Positions 608 through 49,035 of a DNA stretch of 64,000 bases are shown piece after piece; position 1 is the stretch's first letter; every line of letters starts with the position of its first letter. The DNA is taken from positions 1-64,000 of the IMG/VR virus record IMGVR_UViG_3300033153_007973; one strand, 5' to 3'. Position numbers and translations under genes: made by a program. The notes under the pieces are model-generated. The model was given only the letters and a program-made list of their open reading frames with translations. It had not been told where the DNA came from and searched no databases.

Positions 608-3600
608 TTACTTCGACGTATCCGACATCACCATTGTGTTGCTTCTTGAAGCCATTTGAAGGAAGAGACTTACAATGCTCCCGTCATCACCTTGAGCCGC
701 TGCTCGATGGAGACTTATAACTCCTCCGCTCATTATGGAATGAGCAACTGGTGTTGTCCTTGCGCATATTACGCTGACGCCGGACTGCCACTTACCACCT
801 TTAAACATGCTTTCGACCACCTTCTGCGCGGTCTCTGGCAGGCGCACGAGCTTTGAGAGCTCGTCCTGCAGTTCCTGTCTTGGGACTGCTTCCAGTGACC
901 TTAGCATATTTGTTACTATATCTAGAGTAGCCTTTTGCCCTTCACTATTCTTACTGTTTAGAGCAGGCTGTGCGAGTGAATGGTAGAGATCATTTGCATA
1001 TGTAATCCCTACTCTACCATGATCTTGCACCATGATATTTCGCATGATATTACCAATGTTACCGGCATTTGCAGCACCTTCTTTCATAAATCTGAACTCG
1101 GCTGCTGCAGCTGCCTGACCTTTAACTATGTGCTCAATGCTGACTCTTCCCTTCATATACCTGTTGAAGTCAGCATTTTTCTCTTTGCTATATCTGTCGC
1201 GGATATCTCTCCAGTTTTCGCTGGTACCAGTGGACATTGAAAACCGAAAGTCTACTTTCCGCTTCATGAGATTTTCGCGGGGAGAGATTTTGAGCCCCTT
1301 TAAGGCTTTGGAACAAGAAAGCATGTTGAAATACTTGGCGATCCAGATTTTGCTCAAGTCTGCTTTTGCCTTTGCTCCTAATGGAGCATATGCAATCATT
1401 GTATCGCCATCAAAGTCACCATCGAAAACAGTAACTAATGCTGGATTGAAGCGAATTGTGTTTCCCTTCCATACTAGCATTCTCATGCCTGCTACGTTGT
1501 TTACCTGATGTGCCGGATTTCGGCTGATTAGGCATCTTGCCTTTTGGCGTTTCAGGATAGAATTAATGGATCCTGTTGTTAGGTCCATCCAGTCATCTTC
1601 CGGAATCATATAGGATTTTCGGAAATCGGCAGATGCACACCATTTCTTAAATAGCCGAATTGGAATCTCGCATGTTGTCATGTCTAGTTGTGGATTACCC
1701 GATATTACTGCATGGCAGCTTCTGATAACTCTTGGAAATGCCAGCATTCGGATTATACCTGTCTTCCTGAACAGACGCTTTGCGATACCATTCATTACCA
1801 TGTTGAACATTTGATTTGAGCGAGTTATCATACTTCGCTCTATCCATGGATTGTCATATCCTCCAGCTTTGTGCTTTTCGAAGTTCTGGAAGTATACGAG
1901 CAATGTGTTCAATGCGTTCTGAACATCCGAAACTGTGAAACTTCCATTATTGAGCATATGGGCTTTTAGCGTTTTCGGTACTCTGATGTACATTTCGCCA
2001 TCCGAGCACACATATACATCTTCGGTTTTCACTTTATCTCGGCCCATTCGTGCATTTCGCTCAAATTGGGTTGGGTCATATGATGGTACATTTATCGATC
2101 TTGCGAATGCACCTAAAATTAACTTCATGTCTTTTGGAACTCGAACATAGCCATTTGACTTTAGAAGCCGTGGATCTAGAACTGTTCTCTCACGTAGTTC
2201 TGATTCCACGATATCAGTTTCAGCTGTAAGTGCTGTTCGGTCGATTGCTGTATCGATCACAATCCCATCCATTTGCGATTTCGGCACCAAGAAGCCATTT
2301 CTGGATTTCTTAATAAATCCGCCTTCTAGTGTAAATCCGAAACATTGCATATGATCGATTGTCGCCTCTTCCGCTTGCGTTTTGCGTACTTCGAGGACTA
2401 TCTCTTTTATGAGCTCATCCGCATTAACAGAGTATAAGCTAAACATAACATCAGCAAGAGTATACATACCTTTACCGCGGGGAGCGACTCCTCTATAGTC
2501 CATTAGGACATCCCTGCTGGCCTTAGCCTTTGATTCGGCATGTTGTTCAAGTCGAAAGTATCTAACCCAACCATAGCCCACGTTTTCATACCAGCTACCA
2601 TTTGTCCAGTCTACAACTAGTGCTTCTCGAGGTAGTTTAACTTCTTTGAGTTTCTTCGTAGCATCTTTGAATGAAATGTCATTTGCCAAAAGGGGCATTT
2701 TGCCTTGTGTTGTCTTTCGGGCATATATGCTATACATTTCTTCAAGAATTCGACTCGGACAGCACCTTTTTCCGACATATGGTGGAACGATGATATCTAC
2801 TGGTTGATCATTTATCTTTGGCATATCTTTTCTTGGCAGGATTTTTGCCACAATAACCTTGTTGCCATGATGATCTGCCAGTTTGTCACCGATTGATAAT
2901 CTTAAGGGATAACTCGATTCAACTTGTATATACTTTACGTTTTCATCGGAGTCGTCTCCATTCTCGATTCTTATGTCCGTCACGATAGCTGTTCTCTGTA
3001 GAGATGATCGCATAGGTCCGGCTTTGCATTTCCCGAGGTGTCCTCTGTTTACATATGCATCTAGAGTGTTCACCGCGGAGCGGAACTTCTGGATCATCTC
3101 TGCAGGATTGATTCGCAGAGGTTGTACCGCCAATTCTGCATCTCTGGCTTTGAAGATATCATAGTGTTTGACAATTGTTATGAATTCTTCAGATGCTTCT
3201 TTCGAAATGACACAGCCATCTTCATGAGTATATCCATAATACTCCATTCTTGCTGCCAGAAGATTTCGACCATGGGGTCGGAATTCTGGCTCATCATTCA
3301 TGTCTGCTTCTGGATTTAACATGAGAGGAGGCTCATCGTAGAGTAACTCACATGCTTGTGTTGTATATCTGGCCACGACTTGTCTGTTCGGCGAGATATG
3401 TCGATGAAATGGGTTGTGAGCAAAGATCCAGCTTACTGGGTACTTACCATATGCAATGACATCTCCATCGCTAGTGATTTTGGTTCCCAAACTCAGGTGT
3501 ACTATCTCACCTGCTTTTCCGCTCTGTTGGGTATCACTCATGACAAGATATTCGTTATTGTAAATCTTTTCTGGAGCTCCAAATGGAAGCACAACCTTGC

Positions 3601-4234
3601 CTGCTACATCTCTAGCTTTTAGACGGCTAGGAATATACTCCATTCTGAGCGAGTTTTCGTTGGATACTATTCTTTGAAGCATACCCTGACTGATATTCTC
3701 ACATGCAAACTGATACAGCTTGGAGACTACTTTCTCGTATATCAGGGTATTCTTCCTTACGAGGCGCCATCGGGCAGCATTGTAGCACGATGGTAACGTA
3801 GTTGCGATAACTTTCTTGAATTCACTGAAGTTCAGATACCTGCTCTCTGGTATCCATCCGAAGGTTTGTTTAAACCTGGCTAATTCAGCATCACTGAATA
3901 CCGCACGTTGCAGTATTCTCTCGGTAGCTGTTCCATCGAACGTAGAAGCACGATGATGCTCATGTGGAATATGAAGCATCTTCTTTTCCCAGTTGTACTT
4001 AAGAAATTGTGTAATGGATACTTCTTGGTCATGTGTGATGCATACTGGTGATAACATTACATAATACGGTGGGATCATTCGGTCGTAGTCACGTGCCACG
4101 ACTCTCGCCTTCTTCTCTCCGCGCTTGGTGTTCGCAGTGATGTCGATTTTCATTTCGCCATCTTCGAATAATACACTTAGTTGCGCAGAAGCTCCCGTGG
4201 CGAATTCAACGTGCAGGTCGTTGAAACTCGTCAT
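608..4234 (-). CDS. Single-chain DNA-directed RNA polymerase (fused, minimal beta + beta' like)
   Basis: Beta motifs in order: PFHRH..NRQVVA..TQA, GRNL..YYGYTHEDGCVIS, IGDKLADHHGNKVIVAKILPRKDMP..VDII, YFRLEQHAESK. Then beta' motifs: KTGIIR..PRVIRSCHAVIS, LISRNPAH, catalytic FDGDFDGDTM. Confidence 0.93.
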   Translation of the reverse strand: MTSFNDLHVEFATGASAQLSVLFEDGEMKIDITANTKRGEKKARVVARDYDRMIPPYYVMLSPVCITHDQEVSITQFLKYNWEKKMLHIPHEHHRASTFDGTATERILQRAVFSDAELARFKQTFGWIPESRYLNFSEFKKVIATTLPSCYNAARWRLVRKNTLIYEKVVSKLYQFACENISQGMLQRIVSNENSLRMEYIPSRLKARDVAGKVVLPFGAPEKIYNNEYLVMSDTQQSGKAGEIVHLSLGTKITSDGDVIAYGKYPVSWIFAHNPFHRHISPNRQVVARYTTQACELLYDEPPLMLNPEADMNDEPEFRPHGRNLLAARMEYYGYTHEDGCVISKEASEEFITIVKHYDIFKARDAELAVQPLRINPAEMIQKFRSAVNTLDAYVNRGHLGKCKAGPMRSSLQRTAIVTDIRIENGDDSDENVKYIQVESSYPLRLSIGDKLADHHGNKVIVAKILPRKDMPKINDQPVDIIVPPYVGKRCCPSRILEEMYSIYARKTTQGKMPLLANDISFKDATKKLKEVKLPREALVVDWTNGSWYENVGYGWVRYFRLEQHAESKAKASRDVLMDYRGVAPRGKGMYTLADVMFSLYSVNADELIKEIVLEVRKTQAEEATIDHMQCFGFTLEGGFIKKSRNGFLVPKSQMDGIVIDTAIDRTALTAETDIVESELRERTVLDPRLLKSNGYVRVPKDMKLILGAFARSINVPSYDPTQFERNARMGRDKVKTEDVYVCSDGEMYIRVPKTLKAHMLNNGSFTVSDVQNALNTLLVYFQNFEKHKAGGYDNPWIERSMITRSNQMFNMVMNGIAKRLFRKTGIIRMLAFPRVIRSCHAVISGNPQLDMTTCEIPIRLFKKWCASADFRKSYMIPEDDWMDLTTGSINSILKRQKARCLISRNPAHQVNNVAGMRMLVWKGNTIRFNPALVTVFDGDFDGDTMIAYAPLGAKAKADLSKIWIAKYFNMLSCSKALKGLKISPRENLMKRKVDFRFSMSTGTSENWRDIRDRYSKEKNADFNRYMKGRVSIEHIVKGQAAAAAEFRFMKEGAANAGNIGNIMRNIMVQDHGRVGITYANDLYHSLAQPALNSKNSEGQKATLDIVTNMLRSLEAVPRQELQDELSKLVRLPETAQKVVESMFKGGKWQSGVSVICARTTPVAHSIMSGGVISLHRAAAQGDDGSIVSLFLQMASRSNTMVMSDTSK

Positions 4235-5096: not shown

Positions 5097-5260
5097 ATGT
5101 CACCTCTGTATGGATCAAATAAGTCATCGTTACTTTTCAGGACTTTTGATCTCATTTTATTGCCTTCTTTAGTGCTAAGAATAGACAGAACGGCATGATG
5201 ATTATAACCACTACTGCAATAACTAGTATATTAGCTGATGGTGCTTCGCATTTTTCCATT

Positions 5261-9350: not shown

Positions 9351-10493
9351 TTATTCGTAATCACGAATTATGCCGACTGGAAACTGAGGAACTGCCTTGC
9401 CATTTCCATCGGTACTACTAGTAATTGTCTGGTATCGTACCGTTAGTTGTTTACCGAGGTATGTGCCTTCTCCAGCTTTGAGCATTTCTTGACGATAAAG
9501 AAGAGTTCCTTTTGGGCGAACATTGAATTCTGCACCATCTTTAGTCTTACATTTAAACATAATACAGGTATAATGAATTCCATTTATGTCTTGAGTCTCA
9601 GACTCTACGCCTATGATTTTATATTCTTTCTCTTCCATATCTTTTTTCTTGAGTAAATCATTGCTTCTGTGACCATAAAGGTATTCAGATGCAGCATTAC
9701 GGATGATCGTGCCTTCGAAGCCTTCTTTGATGAAGTCTTTATGGAATTTCTCCATATCGGCTTCAGTTTTACATGGTTCAGTAGCCACGGCTCTGAGGGG
9801 ATTCTTCACCGCTCCTTGCCAACTACTTTTGCTACCCCATCTGTGTTCAAACCTACCTGTATCTGGAGTTGCATCATCGAATATCCAGTATTCGAGTGTT
9901 TGGGTATCTTCGCGAGCTTTCTTGGTTGCTGAGGCAATTCTCTGAAGGCTCCATCCATGATAATAGAGCTCACCATCTAGAGTTTGTCCGGGTCTCATGA
10001 TTTCTTTCAGGCGTTCTATGAGCTTCTTATTCTCTTTCATAACGGCATAGTAGTCCTTACCGTTACGACTGGTCATAGTCAAGCTACCATCATCATTCAT
10101 GGTGGTCATGCAGCGAACGCCATCAAGCTTTGGTTGGACATATGCTGGCCATGTTATATGTTTCTTGCGTTCTTTGTACTTATGTGCTAACATTGGGCGT
10201 GTGGAGATATGCTTTTCGGCGTCCTTCATAGATTCTGTATACTCTTTGCGTTCCTTCTTGTGTGTCCAAGATGCTTCTGCTTCAAGATATGCTTGCTCGA
10301 GGGGTGTAGTGGCGTTTGACTTACCAATATTCTTTCCCTCTGTAATGGTTTTGCTACGTTCGATCATCTTACCATCGACTTTGCCATTATTGGTAACAAT
10401 AATTGCATACTTACCGACACTTGCCACGCGGATGGACCATTGCTTGATTCCTCCATCCTTGGACTTTGCATAGAGTATTGGAAACTTAGTCAT
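9351..10493 (-). CDS. ATP-dependent DNA ligase
   Basis: PMLA, QPKLDGVRC, LDGELY, FEGTIIR, RSNDLLKKK, TVRYQ, PQFPV. Confidence 0.93.
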   Translation of the reverse strand: MTKFPILYAKSKDGGIKQWSIRVASVGKYAIIVTNNGKVDGKMIERSKTITEGKNIGKSNATTPLEQAYLEAEASWTHKKERKEYTESMKDAEKHISTRPMLAHKYKERKKHITWPAYVQPKLDGVRCMTTMNDDGSLTMTSRNGKDYYAVMKENKKLIERLKEIMRPGQTLDGELYYHGWSLQRIASATKKAREDTQTLEYWIFDDATPDTGRFEHRWGSKSSWQGAVKNPLRAVATEPCKTEADMEKFHKDFIKEGFEGTIIRNAASEYLYGHRSNDLLKKKDMEEKEYKIIGVESETQDINGIHYTCIMFKCKTKDGAEFNVRPKGTLLYRQEMLKAGEGTYLGKQLTVRYQTITSSTDGNGKAVPQFPVGIIRDYE

Positions 10494-12868: not shown

Positions 12869-14023
12869 TTATGCTCCTGCCTTGAAATTATAGATAGGCT
12901 TAACAAACTTCTTGACCTCGACGGTGTCCTCCATTGCCTTGATAATCATATCTTTATCTTTGTATGCGCCTGGAGCTTCATCGAGAGTGTTCTTTGTTGC
13001 TGATGTTGTAAATACGCCGGCATCCTTCATGCCTGCCTGCATGTCTTCTAGGGAGAGCTGTTCCTTAGCTCTCTTCCTGGAGAGGACTCGGCCGGCACCA
13101 TGTGGTGCTGAGAAGTTCCAGTCCTTATTACCTTTGCCCTTACCAAGAATTAAGCCATCCTTCATATTAAATGGAATGACTACTTCTAGATCCTTAGATG
13201 CATTAATAGCACCCTTGCGGATGATACCAGCATGTGTATCTATATAGTTATGTACTGAATGAATCTGATGTCGTGGTTCGAGACTACACCCCTTTTGCAG
13301 ATGTTCCAGAATCTTCTTAGTTAGTAGTTCTCGATTGATTTGTGCGAAGGTTGTAGCAACTCGCATGTCTTCTAGATACTCTTTAGATCCAAATTCCTCT
13401 GTGAGGAACTCGAGACGGTGATATGCAGCACCAATGAACATCTTCTTCATTGCTTCTTTGGCTTTGTTCTGGTGGTGCATGCAGATATCATTACCAAACT
13501 TTCTGGATCCTGAGTGTATCGTGAGCCATTTCTGATCTTCCTCATCGATGCCTATCTCAATGAAGTGGTTCCCACCACCTAGGCTACCCATTGCATGGAG
13601 GTTTCTGTTAGTGTCTGTCTTCATGCGAGTACCAACTTCTGTGATTCTCTCCATGAGAGGGCCTAAGATGCCTCTGGGATTTGGTGTCTTAGCGTTTACA
13701 CTGAAACCGCTTGCGATGCTATTATGAATAAAGTTGTCAAGCTTCTCGAGGTTGATATCGTCATCATTTAGTTTCGTGGAGAGCACGCCACATCCGATAT
13801 CTACACCCACAATGCAAGGAATGACATATTCATTCGTGGTCATAGTGAATCCAATACAGCTACCCATACCAGCATGACAATCAGGCATAATTACGATATT
13901 GGACTTTGCAAATGCAGGATGGTTAAGGAAGCCATAAATCTGAGTAGTGACAGATTCTTCCAGATGAGATTCATCTGGAAGCATGATCTTAGCTACGTTG
14001 TGCTTTGCTTTGATTACGAACAT
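12869..14023 (-). CDS. rtcB: RtcB RNA ligase (3'-phosphate/5'-OH)
   Basis: IMPDCHAG, VGVDIGCG, GSLGGGNHFIE, IHSGSR, HNY, RKGA, SAPHGAGR, DEAPGAYK. Confidence 0.96.
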   Translation of the reverse strand: MFVIKAKHNVAKIMLPDESHLEESVTTQIYGFLNHPAFAKSNIVIMPDCHAGMGSCIGFTMTTNEYVIPCIVGVDIGCGVLSTKLNDDDINLEKLDNFIHNSIASGFSVNAKTPNPRGILGPLMERITEVGTRMKTDTNRNLHAMGSLGGGNHFIEIGIDEEDQKWLTIHSGSRKFGNDICMHHQNKAKEAMKKMFIGAAYHRLEFLTEEFGSKEYLEDMRVATTFAQINRELLTKKILEHLQKGCSLEPRHQIHSVHNYIDTHAGIIRKGAINASKDLEVVIPFNMKDGLILGKGKGNKDWNFSAPHGAGRVLSRKRAKEQLSLEDMQAGMKDAGVFTTSATKNTLDEAPGAYKDKDMIIKAMEDTVEVKKFVKPIYNFKAGA

Positions 14024-23959: not shown

Positions 23960-24079
23960 ATGATTAACTGTGCCGAGTGTCGTTGGCAGACAACGCTCAT
24001 CAGGGTTTGTTCGCTGCCGCGACCCTGACCATCATAATACAACCAATCTGTCGTATATACGAGAGACACAGTTAATCAT
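23960..24079 (-). ncRNA. Candidate structured RNA between tmRNA and tRNA-Asn
   Basis: 13-bp terminal stem ATGATTAACTGTG/CACAGTTAATCAT enclosing three hairpins. Confidence 0.5.
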
Positions 24080-24081
24080 TT

Positions 24082-24457
24082 TGGACCCGGCGGCATCGAA
24101 GCCGCGTCCGCGATCTTTTCCCCTCAGAAAGTTTACTACCATTGGGAGCGAGCAAGCTCGCACGTTCCACCATCCCTTATTTAGCGACTAGGGAAGTCGT
24201 AACGAGTCCCTTTCGGGAGTAACTCCCTTCAGTGCGTGCCTCCCCGGGTACAGAAGGGTACTCTTGCCGGTTCAGCCCTGCACTCTTAAGCGCAGGCAAC
24301 GTTCTGGTTCATGGAACCGAAGTTCCCGACCAGAATCGTGTCGTTGGCGTTAGTTTCGTCAACTTTGGTTTGAATCCTCAGTTTTATGACTTAAGCATTC
24401 TTAGGTCAGGTAGCTTTCTTTGTTTACTAGAACCGCGTCGAAACCAATTTCGGGCCC
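24082..24457 (-). ncRNA. ssrA: tmRNA
   Basis: 5' GGGCCCGAAATTGGTTTCGAC and 3' GACGCGGCTTCGATGCCGCCGGGTCCA; G3-U acceptor wobble; tag ORF 24348-24286 reads ANDTILVGNFGSMNQNVACA*. Confidence 0.92.
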
Positions 24458-33355: not shown

Positions 33356-34408
33356 TTATTTTCCATGAACGATATCATTGAACTTTTCGTTTGCGTCATA
33401 TCCCCATTCTCGACCGATTTTACACTCTTCTTCTTCATCAACCTTGAAGATATCAGCTGTGCACGTGGGTCCTTTAGGGATGAAACTTCCGGTACCGATA
33501 CCATCAAACGCATCTTTGACATGCATAAAGGCTTCTGTCTTCACGGCGTCAAATCCTGAGGATACAAAGATCTTAACGCCTTTTCCACCTGCTGCATCGA
33601 GTTCACTGCGTAAACGAGCAACGGCATTCATAGTAACACCTTTCTCTAGGGCATTTGAGGAACTGTCAATCTGAGCATAGTTCTCACCACAAGTGTCGGT
33701 GCGTACTCCATAAAGCTTGTCTCCACAGTGTTTAAGGAGTGATAAAGTATCATCAATCTCCTTATTATTATAATCGATCAGGGCAATAAACTTGTCATCT
33801 GGGAGAGCTTTCATGTATGCATCTGCCATCTTGATATAATCTCCGCGGAAGATAGCAATCAAAGCATGAGGTGTGGTTCCTATTCCTTTACCAGAAGGTA
33901 GGTCAATTTGATTGATAATGTTACGTATATCATCGGCACGGTTACTGAGATAATTCTGTGCTTCTGCTCCTGTATCAGTACTGACTCCTCTGATTCCGCC
34001 AACGTATCCACCATATGATGCTAGTGCAACAGATTCTGCACCATAGAGATGACGTGCAGAGAAATCAAGAACTGGTTTCCCATCTGCTGCGTTCACAATT
34101 GCTTTGGCATGATATGCACAGTAACAAGGTAGAGCGCACCATTGAAGGTAAAGAGTCTCGAGCTCTACGATGTTCTGGAAGAATCCTTTTACAATCATCA
34201 TAGTATCACCAGATTTAAACTCAGTTCCAGTGGGAAGGATATCGATATCTGACATGGGTGCTAGTGTTCTGATCAGTGCCGCTGCAGGTTCGAGTGCAGC
34301 AATACCATTAGAGCGACCAAATATACGATATGATACTCGTGGATTCATCCTGGTTTCCTCAGCAACAATTCGGGATTTGCTGAAGTACTTATCTGTGAAT
34401 GGATTCAT
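33356..34408 (-). CDS. pncB: Nicotinate phosphoribosyltransferase-like (short type II PRTase)
   Basis: TDKYF, ELET, DFSARH, GTTPHALI, LIDY, GVRTDT, IFVSSGF, GIGTGS, TADI. Confidence 0.82.
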   Translation of the reverse strand: MNPFTDKYFSKSRIVAEETRMNPRVSYRIFGRSNGIAALEPAAALIRTLAPMSDIDILPTGTEFKSGDTMMIVKGFFQNIVELETLYLQWCALPCYCAYHAKAIVNAADGKPVLDFSARHLYGAESVALASYGGYVGGIRGVSTDTGAEAQNYLSNRADDIRNIINQIDLPSGKGIGTTPHALIAIFRGDYIKMADAYMKALPDDKFIALIDYNNKEIDDTLSLLKHCGDKLYGVRTDTCGENYAQIDSSSNALEKGVTMNAVARLRSELDAAGGKGVKIFVSSGFDAVKTEAFMHVKDAFDGIGTGSFIPKGPTCTADIFKVDEEEECKIGREWGYDANEKFNDIVHGK

Positions 34409-34962
34409 TTGCTGGACCCATTTTGCACAGTTATACCGTATAGGGTCAACATACGTTGAAGAGCAGCTTCCCCTGCTTCTGGTATCAGATCATCTACGAG
34501 ATCTTTGTGAACAATGATTTTCGGGAGCTTCTTATCTTGGTTCTTCATCTCATTGATGATCGAGGTAACGACATCATGGACACAAATGCTTGTGCATACA
34601 CCAGTTATATGGATTTCGGGATTTTCCTTACCCTCACACCAGTCTATGATGTTATTAACAATGCAAGCAGATGTATATCCCTTCTTGACAAAGCGAATAA
34701 TGGCTTTGTTCTCCGGAATAGCATCTTCAATAGGTTCAACGATCTTCGTACCTTCTGTCTCTTCGATACAGTGTTCTGGGAACAGCTTGAATTCAGGATC
34801 ACCTTTGCTGTGTCTGTCCATGGTGAGCATAATATCACCATCAAATGCTTTGACGAAATTGGCTACACGACCTTGAAGTTCTTTCGTGTCGTGACCAATA
34901 TACAACTTACCATCCTTATTTAGAAAGTCATTCTGCATATCTACTACGATTAGTAATTTCAT
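34405..34962 (-). CDS. pncA: Nicotinamidase / pyrazinamidase
   Basis: VVDMQNDF...G.L, MDRH, FPEHC...TEG, K, GVCTSICV. Confidence 0.88.
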   Translation of the reverse strand: MKLLIVVDMQNDFLNKDGKLYIGHDTKELQGRVANFVKAFDGDIMLTMDRHSKGDPEFKLFPEHCIEETEGTKIVEPIEDAIPENKAIIRFVKKGYTSACIVNNIIDWCEGKENPEIHITGVCTSICVHDVVTSIINEMKNQDKKLPKIIVHKDLVDDLIPEAGEAALQRMLTLYGITVQNGSSK

Positions 34963-39923: not shown

Positions 39924-40318
39924 GACTGGATCATCTTTTCTTGGCACGTTTCCTCTCCGATCCTGCCCAGGTCTCAAGTGCAGATTTGAGCATTTTGTAT
40001 ATCTCTTGCTCAGACTTGAGGCTGATGTCATCTACTTTGGTAGTCGACTGTTTCTTAGTTCTTCCTTCTCTCGTAATTAATGTTAGCTTAATCATCTGGG
40101 TTTATCCGTATTCTGAAGGTACGATGTGGCAAATGCTACTCCTAGGGAGACCCAGACAACTTTCATACTAAAGAATGGGATCGGACCACCGATGAATCCC
40201 TTCAGTAAGAACCATGCACCTAAATAGATGAATACGATCGTTAATATGATTTTGGCGATCATAGCAACCAGTGCTGCTTTTGTTGATGCTTCCATTGTTT
40301 CCTCCAGTAATAAAGACC

Positions 40319-40737
40319 ACGTCGGCAAGGGACTCCAACAGCATCGGGAGGCAGAGCCCGCGGGAAACGACCATACTTTAATGAGGAAACCACTCCTCAC
40401 CCGATTTCGCCCGGCGTAGTCTAATTATTCAAGTTGTACCAGCAAGGGAACCCAACAGCATCGGGAGCAGGTTCCGCGGAGGCCCGCCAAGGTCTAATAG
40501 GGATGACTCCCTACCCGATTTCGCCTGGTACAACAGCTTACTATTCAAATTGTACTGGCTAGGGAGTCGCAAATCGGCAACGATACTCGCAGTCTCAGAG
40601 GACTATGCTCGATTCCGCCCAGTACAACAGCTTACTAGTTATCTCGGTAAAGAGTCCCAACAGCACTAGGAGCAGGACCCGCGGGCAAGCTTTAACGAGG
40701 ACTGTCAGGAACCCCGCCTAGTTTCGCCCGAGTTAAC
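40319..40737 (-). ncRNA. Tandem array of four homologous structured ncRNAs (40319-40417, 40433-40534, 40550-40627, 40638-40737)
   Basis: Shared GGCGAAA, TTARA, CCGC, TGCTGTTG and CTTG motifs with covarying stems. Confidence 0.75.
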
Positions 40738-41112
40738 TTATTCTTTGACTTTCTTGATCATATCTTCGAGTGCTTCGTTTGCCAGCTTTGCAATATTACT
40801 GGGTATCTTTTTGACATCCTCATTATTCGCGATCTTCGGTAAAACATAGATCATCGACATTGTTTTGGATGTTGGAATCAGCACTGAGATGGGAGTAAAG
40901 ATGAGACAGATAATTATTCCCCATTTCATGATCGGCCAAGCTTTCTCTGCATCGCAATCGCATTGTCTTCCATCTCTGTCGAAATCACTATTAGCGACAT
41001 ATGCAATGCCGGATATTACAGCTGTAATAGATGATAATGCAGCTATTACGATACAGATTGAAGAGATAGCATCCAACCTCGTAATAATGTAAATTGTCCA
41101 GCCTAAACTCAT
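40738..41112 (-). CDS. Membrane protein (conserved phage type)
   Basis: IYIITRLD, two TMs, LIPTSKTM. Confidence 0.65.
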   Translation of the reverse strand: MSLGWTIYIITRLDAISSICIVIAALSSITAVISGIAYVANSDFDRDGRQCDCDAEKAWPIMKWGIIICLIFTPISVLIPTSKTMSMIYVLPKIANNEDVKKIPSNIAKLANEALEDMIKKVKE

Positions 41113-41508: not shown

Positions 41509-42609
41509 CTACTCATCATGGCGTAAAAGCCAGTTCGGATTGACCACCTTGAACGAAAGTCGGCCTATATGGTCATCTCTGAGACTCTCATTGACTGATC
41601 TGATGACAATACCTTCTCTGATGTGATCGGGATAAATCTTGCTCATTCCTTTGGATATCTCGACCATTTCCTCTACTGAATTAGGTAGAGTAGTACTGTT
41701 CTCGAGTATGGGTACATGTTCAAATCCATATCTTTGGCAGAACTTAAGCATATCTTCAAAATCCAAGTACTTGGATGTTTGAAGGTCTAGAACGTTATAT
41801 ACAAAGACTTTGTGTTCCTTAAGTCTGTACTTGTTCTTCTGGATGCCAGGTCCGCAAAGCTCACCTTGTATGCAGATATCTTGGTTTACGCTACGTAGTT
41901 TCTCTTCGATACTATCTCTAAGTGCTACTACCCAGAATGTGTTTTGCTTCTTGGGTTTAGGTTTTATGAATAAGCTCTTGAACCATGCAGGAAAGCCTTT
42001 CTTCTCAATATCTGGAAGAATCTGCATATTCCTACTAGCAACACCGAATTCATCATCTCGGATCCAATATGATGCCGAGGAACCATCAAGTTTCTCTGTA
42101 ATATAGAATTGTTTATCGCAGTGTCGTCTAATAATTCCAGGTATTGTCTGAATTCTGTCTTCGTCTGTCTTTGGGATAAATCCTGGGCGTGTTTTCGTCC
42201 GGCGTCCGCTGAGCATAGCTGGCATCTGGGGCTCCCACTTGAGAATGCCCAGTACTTTGGTGACATCATCTCCAATCTGTAGTGCCTTGTCGCCTTCGGA
42301 TTGATCGATGATGCTCATAGGAAATGCAATACCCTGTGAGACTTGTTTACGCAGCTTGATGGTCTTAATTCGATATCCGCGGTCTTTGAGGAACTCGAAT
42401 TCAGGTCGTGGCGGTAGGATGCTATCTATTTCACAATAAACGCACTTGCTGCCGATTTTGAAGTCGTCCTTCTTGTTGATGACGACTTTCCACCCGAGGA
42501 TCGTCGCGACTTCGATTTGGTTCGCGTTCGGGATAGCTTTGATCGCTTTGATTTCTTGGATCGAGGCGAGCTTTCTGCTGATTTCGTTGTTACTGTTGTC
42601 TGTGACCAC
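41509..42609 (-). CDS. RNA ligase, Rnl2 / DRB0094 family
   Basis: RKLASIQ.I..I..I.NA..IE, VYCEIDS.LP, SQG, KTDEDRIQ, TEKLDGSS, QGELCGPGIQKN, EGIVIR, SFKVVN. Confidence 0.92.
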   Translation of the reverse strand: MVTDNSNNEISRKLASIQEIKAIKAIPNANQIEVATILGWKVVINKKDDFKIGSKCVYCEIDSILPPRPEFEFLKDRGYRIKTIKLRKQVSQGIAFPMSIIDQSEGDKALQIGDDVTKVLGILKWEPQMPAMLSGRRTKTRPGFIPKTDEDRIQTIPGIIRRHCDKQFYITEKLDGSSASYWIRDDEFGVASRNMQILPDIEKKGFPAWFKSLFIKPKPKKQNTFWVVALRDSIEEKLRSVNQDICIQGELCGPGIQKNKYRLKEHKVFVYNVLDLQTSKYLDFEDMLKFCQRYGFEHVPILENSTTLPNSVEEMVEISKGMSKIYPDHIREGIVIRSVNESLRDDHIGRLSFKVVNPNWLLRHDE

Positions 42610-48585: not shown

Positions 48586-49035
48586 CTAGAATAGGTTCTC
48601 CTTGATCTCTTTTCTGACATGCAGCCCCTCACGGATTTCCATCAGGATACGGCCCAGCATATTCTCTCCATGCATGGTTGTCAAGTCCTTTCCCCAGAAT
48701 ACGTCATTCCAGGTATTACCCTCGATGAGTTCTTCTGTGCCGGTTTTCAGCAGCATATTTGCTAACTGGGGCTTGGAGAACTTCTTGCGAACCAGCATCC
48801 GCATGATGGTTACTCTTACTTCCTGCCAGTCACTACGTAAGCTGACCTGCCGGCCGGCACGCTTGGCCTGGCCTGGTGAGGCTAGGTTGGATATTCTTAC
48901 TCTCTCTTTGATATCAGGGGTTTTACACGCCTGAAACGCATGCTCTACAGATGGGTAGTTCACACCATCGTGCACGAGTGTTGTTGGGAAGAAATTACTC
49001 AGAAAGAAGTGGCCTCCCTGGAATATCTTTATCAT
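48586..49035 (-). CDS. NADAR (YbiA-like) protein
   Basis: FLSNF, YPSVEHAFQA.K, AKRAGR, RSDW, LLKTG...LIEGNTWNDVFWG, GENMLGRILM. Confidence 0.92.
   Translation of the reverse strand: MIKIFQGGHFFLSNFFPTTLVHDGVNYPSVEHAFQACKTPDIKERVRISNLASPGQAKRAGRQVSLRSDWQEVRVTIMRMLVRKKFSKPQLANMLLKTGTEELIEGNTWNDVFWGKDLTTMHGENMLGRILMEIREGLHVRKEIKENLF

Follow-up and report, generated by a model that had tools for sequence, protein, structure and literature searches.

A phage contig of 234,008 bp carries, in tandem, three canonical copies and one degenerate copy of a pseudoknotted RNA fold of ~100 nt that matches no Rfam family, and a copy of the same fold occurs in an unrelated mobile element. We consider it highly likely that this is a real, new structured RNA family, although its function is not established. 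The contig (IMGVR_UViG_3300033153_007973, also Ga0366824_1000008) was analysed over its first 64,000 nt, hereafter referred to as the window. The array lies on the minus strand, in the sense orientation of the surrounding genes, at positions 40315-40738, and fills the 442-nt gap between two small membrane-protein genes. The upstream gene (40738-41112) encodes a 124-aa membrane protein (phrog_3878), and its stop codon abuts the array; a 35%-identical homologue in another locus, L295, has no array after it. The downstream gene (40092-40295) encodes a 67-aa hydrophobic protein with two predicted membrane spans and no family match. A 36-nt direct repeat (26 of 36 identical) brackets the array, with one copy at the 3′ end of the upstream gene (40746-40781) and the other in codons 5-16 of the downstream gene (40247-40282). 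The best score in 300 shuffles of the two flanks was 24, and the repeat may be a trace of how the array was inserted or duplicated.

The first-pass annotation had described, at 40319-40737, a tandem array of four covarying and apparently pseudoknotted RNAs, and this observation was confirmed: every helix that it listed is present on the minus strand. Two corrections are needed. The true limits are 40315-40738, and only three units are canonical; the 'unit 3' that it took for a shortened variant, counting on the plus strand, is the divergent second unit in the gene-sense order. In this order the units are U1 (40738-40637), U2 (40629-40549), U3 (40534-40433) and U4 (40421-40315), separated by the spacers AGUAAGC, UUGAAUAGUAAGCU and UUGAAUAAUUA. 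U1, U3 and U4 share one architecture. A terminal helix A of 10-11 bp is followed by the junction GCGAA, helix B (A-U/C-N-R-G-G paired with C-C-Y-N-G/A-U), a variable hairpin C with a loop of 4-11 nt, and UUA with a linker of variable length (11-18 nt in total) leading to CCGC. The 5′ strand of helix D (GGNNNC with GNNNCC) then lies inside B and its 3′ strand outside it, so that B and D form an H-type pseudoknot with hairpin C and the variable-length linker in loop 1. Loop 2 is UGC(C)U, loop 3 is GCUGUUG, and a 4-nt junction (CUUG or UUUA) leads back to A.

U1 is the most divergent of the canonical units (95.5-98.7 bits against the covariance models), and its first base is the last A of the upstream TAA stop. 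It consists of A (40738-40728/40647-40637), GCGAA (40727-40723), B (40722-40717/40670-40665), hairpin C (40716-40696), CCGC (40684-40681), D (40680-40675/40657-40652) and loop 3 (40664-40658). U3 (113.3 bits) has A at 40534-40525/40442-40433, with 10 perfect pairs that were also detected as an inverted repeat, B at 40519-40514/40465-40460, C at 40513-40498 and D (GGAACC/GGUUCC) at 40475-40470/40452-40447. U4 (114.4 bits), the last in the array, has A at 40421-40411/40325-40315, B at 40405-40400/40348-40343, C at 40399-40382 and D at 40359-40354/40335-40330; an extra C in its loop 2 gives CCUCC, which is complementary to the GGAGG further downstream. U2 scored only 19.5-20.9 bits (E 0.005 for the latter). 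Its terminal helix is nearly the same as that of U3, but with two compensated pairs (CUGG/CCAG against CCAG/CUGG), and it carries GCGGAA. Possible B (AAUCG/CGAUU) and D (GAGU/ACUC) pairings remain, whereas the conserved CCGCGG, CUGCUCC and UGCUGUUGG junctions are lost. A full-model search of both strands of the whole window found no other copy.

To evaluate the structure quantitatively, we scored the alignment of U1, U3 and U4 with the pseudoknot written out. Of the cells, 96.4% were standard pairs, and 16 of 28 pairs changed on both sides. None of 500 shuffles reached this, and structures whose 3′ partners were slid by 1-3 columns paired in only 38-52% of cells. G-U cells outnumbered A-C cells 7 to 1, so the folded strand is the gene-sense transcript. 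The same array is present, base for base, on a second contig from a sister sample, so it is not an assembly artefact. Minimum-free-energy folding was uninformative because of the pseudoknot (z-scores 0.03 to -2.8 for the canonical units).

A confident match to a known Rfam family had been named in advance as the result that would remove the novelty of these RNAs. We therefore ran cmscan with the 4227 models of Rfam 15, which include hammerhead, twister, twister-sister, pistol, hatchet, HDV-like, Y RNA, STAXI and all riboswitch classes. At gathering score, the whole window gave only 11 tRNAs and a tmRNA. At E<=10, region 40200-40850 gave one chance snoRNA hit on the other strand, and the copy of the GC-rich homologue in L288, described below, gave only chance hits of 6-11.5 bits. 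The tRNA genes are all on the minus strand, scattered among protein genes between 5261 and 33341 rather than in one block, and none is a suppressor. The tmRNA candidate (24079-24457, minus strand; RF00023) scored 49.4 bits against a gathering score of 47 and was not called by ARAGORN. Mimicry of rRNA or tmRNA by the units was also considered; the resemblances were not consistent across units, and a blastn search of E. coli genomes, which include rRNA genes, found nothing.

To look for homologues, as had been proposed when the array was first described, we searched with patterns built from the conserved blocks and filtered the hits by script or covariance model. A junction-only pattern scan of metagenome contigs yielded at least 120 loci, of which one, L172 (Ga0307380_10017319, 8.7 kb, 62-69% GC), paired in all 11 tested positions of B and D, while chance hits reached 9 at most. 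The model built only from the window units scored it 67.5 bits (E 3e-16). Its helix B is identical to that of U3 and U4, whereas helices A, C and D have different sequences that still pair (D, GGGAGC/GCUCCC; C, CGGGGC/GCCUCG). About 35 junction nucleotides, in the blocks GGGCGAAA, UUA, CCGCGG, CUGCUCC and UGCUGUUGG, are identical. An absence of significant covariation in homologues had been stated beforehand as grounds for giving up the RNA claim; with L172 added, 96.3% of cells were paired and 15 of 27 pairs were compensatory, with B, C and D, including the two crossing helices, each 100% paired and A 90% paired. Only two independent lineages are known, so the number of invariant positions may be overestimated.

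L172 is a different kind of element, of 67% GC. It carries a D5/P4-type primase, a Cas4-like nuclease and HTH regulators, and its nearest primase relatives sit in integrase-bearing islands of Armatimonadota MAGs. The unit, downstream of the primase gene, is single-copy there; it sits at the 3′ end of a ~200-nt gap, about 86 nt after the upstream stop and 6 nt before AAGGAG and a start codon. Two further contigs, L288 and L296, carry the same unit. L172 (1-160) and L288 (440-600) are identical up to the 3′ end of the unit, about 77% alike through the ribosome-binding site and unrelated afterwards, where they encode different proteins; L296 against L288 has a second break inside the gene for a 107-aa protein. 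The RNA thus sits at a mosaic junction.

No further member was found elsewhere. Five exact-pattern scans of IMG/VR, each combining different pairs of conserved blocks, returned only the window's own contig as a real hit, although one of the five was not screened exhaustively; the first matched this contig only at the array. A pattern scan of 185,579 species genomes gave 24 hits, none real by covariance model, and blastn of the locus and of the array against cultured phages and E. coli genomes gave nothing. The metagenome scan was incomplete and did not return the window's own contig, so more members probably exist. We also followed five neighbouring proteins by synteny, and no additional instance of the motif was reached through 23 loci with RNA-ligase relatives, relatives of the 124-aa upstream protein, relatives of the L172 primase in Armatimonadota-type integrative elements, relatives of the 107-aa protein of L172 and L288 (which gave only a mosaic of the same element), or relatives of the 73-aa protein encoded downstream of the unit in L288 and L296. 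Homologues of this 73-aa protein in loci L411, L412 and L414 lie in phage replication modules next to 7-deazaguanine genes (PTPS, radical SAM, GTP cyclohydrolase I), without the RNA.

We then considered what the units might do. In the window, the linker from U4 to the next gene (40296-40314) reads UUUAUUACU, then the Shine-Dalgarno sequence GGAGG, then AAACA before the ATG at 40295, so that the folded unit ends 9 nt before the ribosome-binding site; the same layout, with 6 nt, is seen in L172 and L288. The analysis itself shows the closed pseudoknot, the free compensatory drift of its helices, the identity of about 35 junction nucleotides between a ~50%-GC jumbo phage and a 67%-GC element, the folded strand, and the position of the last or only unit 6-9 nt upstream of a strong Shine-Dalgarno sequence in both lineages. 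What follows from these features is inference. So many invariant unpaired nucleotides around a pseudoknot, conserved across very different host backgrounds, point to a precise tertiary pocket rather than a mere stable hairpin; such a core could be a ligand pocket or an active site, or less typically a protein site. We therefore read each unit, tentatively and with less than even confidence, as a new aptamer-type domain that binds a partner common to very different hosts, most simply a small molecule or ion; ligand binding was not assayed. Its position suggests an action on the translation-initiation region just downstream, with the 67-aa protein as the target if the array acts in cis. In this view the invariant pyrimidine stretch CUGCUCC (CCUCC in U4) can pair either inside the pseudoknot or with the GGAG(G) ribosome-binding site, so a folded or bound state would free the site. 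The tandem copies would raise binding capacity or sharpen the response, or, if cut apart at the AU-rich spacers, act as free aptamers. Tandem aptamers upstream of short ORFs have precedent in glnA and Downstream-peptide RNAs (PMC2864571).

The units share with tandem riboswitch aptamers (glycine, glnA/Downstream-peptide) a fold with conserved junctions, covarying helices, a closing helix and a pseudoknot, as well as tandem copies, a location in the leader of a short ORF and presence in phage genomes, but there is no sequence or model match, and no ligand is known. Other features speak against the aptamer reading. Terminal helices of 10-11 bp are far more stable than usual switching P1 stems, and U1-U3 lie 100-400 nt from the ribosome-binding site. 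As to an expression platform, no terminator or clear alternative helix was found; there are only short CUCC/GGAG complementarities, which are common, and, in L288 (555-565), a copy of the 5′ strand of helix D (GGGAGC) in the six bases after the AUG, which could compete for the 3′ strand and is paired in the minimum-free-energy fold but may be a chance match, and these observations do not settle whether such a platform exists. The three downstream ORFs, namely the 67-aa membrane protein, an ORF cut by the contig end in L172, and the 73-aa soluble protein, are unrelated, so that there is no consistent association with genes of one pathway, and no protein family recurs next to the RNA. The start regions of the window and L172 downstream genes, both beginning M/V-E-A-S, agree in 15 of 19 columns, but 30 of 1000 shuffles did as well.

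The several copies in one phage and the unrelated downstream genes fit trans-acting monomers, or a ribozyme, at least as well. In the first alternative, a Y-RNA-like protein decoy or scaffold, which we regard as unlikely but live, the array is transcribed with the operon and cut at the spacers into ~100-nt monomers that are protected by their terminal helices and bind a conserved host or phage protein, with copy number setting the dose. Each unit indeed has its own closing helix, the spacers are single-stranded, AU-rich and 7-14 nt long, and the closing helix of the degenerate U2 is still maintained by compensated changes. In L172 versus L288, the unit travels with the upstream module rather than with a particular downstream gene. 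Against this, about 35 invariant junction bases spread over the whole core is more than protein-binding RNAs usually show, and the element is single-copy in the second lineage. A sponge role, as the first-pass annotation had also proposed, is possible, but nothing in our data tests it.

The resemblance to Y RNAs that the first-pass annotation had raised was examined in more detail. Bacterial and phage Y RNAs (YrlA/YrlB, Yrn1, phiLo Yrl1/2) are 80-130 nt long, have a long helix formed by the 5′ and 3′ ends followed directly by a CGAA-containing motif, and occur in twos to fours (PMC4201824; PMC12135203); RtcB is encoded in the same genome here. In U1, U3, U4 and L172 the terminal stem is followed by GGCGAA, close to the bacterial motif GNCGAAN0-1G (PMC4201824), but the next bases are AU or AC rather than G, and U2 has GGCGGAA, an incomplete likeness that leaves membership undecided on this feature. 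The opposing CUUG is CGGG in L172. The interior is the B × D pseudoknot rather than a large loop or tRNA-like T and D arms, and ARAGORN and the Rfam tRNA model found nothing in 40200-40850. The search for a Ro60/TROVE gene that had been called for found none among the window ORFs of 300 aa or more, in the genes called within ±10 kb, or in the 8.7 kb of L172; the other 170 kb of the phage contig were not examined. The RtcB gene (12869-14023) lies 26 kb away, and an RNA ligase with an OB domain and a nucleotidyltransferase domain (41509-42609) sits two genes upstream of the array. Together with a 1208-aa protein that combines RNA polymerase beta-type (Rpb2_6) and beta-prime-type (Rpb1_2) domains (608-4234) and an ATP-dependent DNA ligase (9351-10493), all on the minus strand, these give the phage a full nucleic-acid repair and transcription kit. 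Eight minus-strand ORFs share the peptide [D/E/N][D/E]LFDP 9-57 residues before their stop codon (motif codon starts at 5128, 18873, 30866, 41144, 42922, 43332, 43852 and 49977); four of them surround the RNA ligase, and the peptide looks like a common docking or targeting tail. NADAR-domain, isochorismatase-family and QRPTase_N-like proteins (minus strand, about 48586-49035, 34405-34962 and 33356-34408) may be NAD or ADP-ribose-related auxiliary genes.

The antitoxin-like role suggested at first was not supported. Type III antitoxin RNAs (ToxI, CptI) and phage pseudo-ToxI are likewise tandem arrays of pseudoknot-forming units, presumably cut into monomers, but ToxI-type repeats are near-identical and about 34-45 nt long, whereas the present units are three times longer, at 81-107 nt, and differ in sequence, with 63% mean column identity, and the direct-repeat families are 60-89% identical. 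Ten flanking proteins scanned against PADLOC gave no hit to a toxin model such as ToxN (ToxN/AbiQ/CptN family), and Pfam and PHROGs also gave none. The exclusion of CRISPR by the first-pass annotation held, since the repeats are long, divergent, internally base-paired and separated by only 7-14 nt. Taken together, its interpretation was partly supported: a structured, pseudoknotted, covarying RNA that matches no known family was borne out, but its specific functional guesses were not.

A second alternative, also unlikely but live, is a new class of self-cleaving ribozyme, in which each unit would cut the polycistronic transcript at a junction and thereby separate cistrons, leave a structured 5′-OH leader on the downstream mRNA, or release unit-length RNAs with 2′,3′-cyclic phosphate and 5′-OH ends that RtcB could join. 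The compact pseudoknotted core with strictly conserved junction bases that do not depend on host background is consistent with this, as are the RtcB and RNA ligase genes. Tandem or clustered copies are typical of small ribozymes in phage and bacterial DNA (PMC6765202; PMC13725137), and the position just upstream of an ORF resembles ribozyme leaders in RNA viruses (PMC13725137). The GCGAA junction recalls the C-N-R-A of HDV J4/2. However, the helix order, A5′-B5′-C-D5′-B3′-D3′-A3′, does not fit twister, HDV-like/theta or pistol ribozymes. The HDV-like order is P1-P2-P3-P1′-P1.1-P4-J4/2-P2′, and the 7 nt between B3′ and D3′ leave no room for P3/L3. Threading by hand onto HDV-like, twister and kink-turn patterns was rejected on helix order and sequence, hammerhead, twister, twister-sister, pistol, hatchet, HDV-like and hairpin models gave no match at E<=10, and no cleavage-site signature can be named; self-scission was not assayed.

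A third alternative, less likely still but live, is a nuclease-blocking or insulating mRNA element, in which the knotted fold stalls exonucleases or hides 5′ ends and stabilises the neighbouring mRNA, with duplication giving redundancy. The combination of an H-type pseudoknot with a closing helix, and an array that starts at the stop codon of one gene and ends at the ribosome-binding site of the next, would fit, and tandem duplication of such xrRNA elements is known in flaviviruses (PMC12397905; PMC6325252). A simple hairpin would be enough for stabilisation, however, the extensive sequence invariance is not explained, no phage xrRNA is known, and in L172 the element is ~86 nt from the upstream stop. 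Finally, a feature of DNA rather than RNA, such as a single-stranded DNA structure, a replication or packaging site or a MITE-like repeat, is very improbable. The unit lies downstream of a primase gene in L172, and STAXI, another tandem pseudoknot motif near DNA-handling genes, was once considered as ssDNA (PMC2864571). The 7 to 1 excess of G-U over A-C cells nevertheless favours one strand read as RNA, and in MITEs the terminal inverted repeats are the conserved part, whereas here they are the most variable part and the interior junctions are conserved. The STAXI motif (Weinberg et al. 2010) is the nearest precedent in kind, being a pseudoknot unit of unknown function repeated two to three times in tandem in mobile DNA, with nucleic-acid-handling genes among the neighbours in both cases, but it differs in consensus and size, its model gave no match at E<=10, and the present units have long closing helices and no UUCG loops.

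As an RNA family, the element is new, as it matches none of the 4227 Rfam models. Its fold is supported by compensatory changes in all four helices, including both strands of a pseudoknot, and by an independent copy in an unrelated element of very different base composition. As a kind of thing, tandem structured RNA modules in mobile DNA have precedents in Y RNA clusters, STAXI, ToxI and tandem aptamers. A more far-reaching possibility, which the evidence does not rule out but which we consider unlikely, is a new catalytic or ligand-binding RNA class that mobile elements use independently of host. It would be either a self-cleaving ribozyme whose tandem copies release unit-length RNAs that the phage's own RtcB or RNA ligase could join or circularise, or an array of free aptamers that soaks up a host small molecule, such as an immune signalling nucleotide, as an RNA counterpart of the known protein sponges. 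RNAs with this much invariant junction sequence usually turn out to be riboswitches, ribozymes or specific partners of the cell's machinery. A new class of any of these in phages would be valuable, as it could reveal a new sensed ligand, a new catalytic fold, or an RNA-based way for phages to handle host factors.
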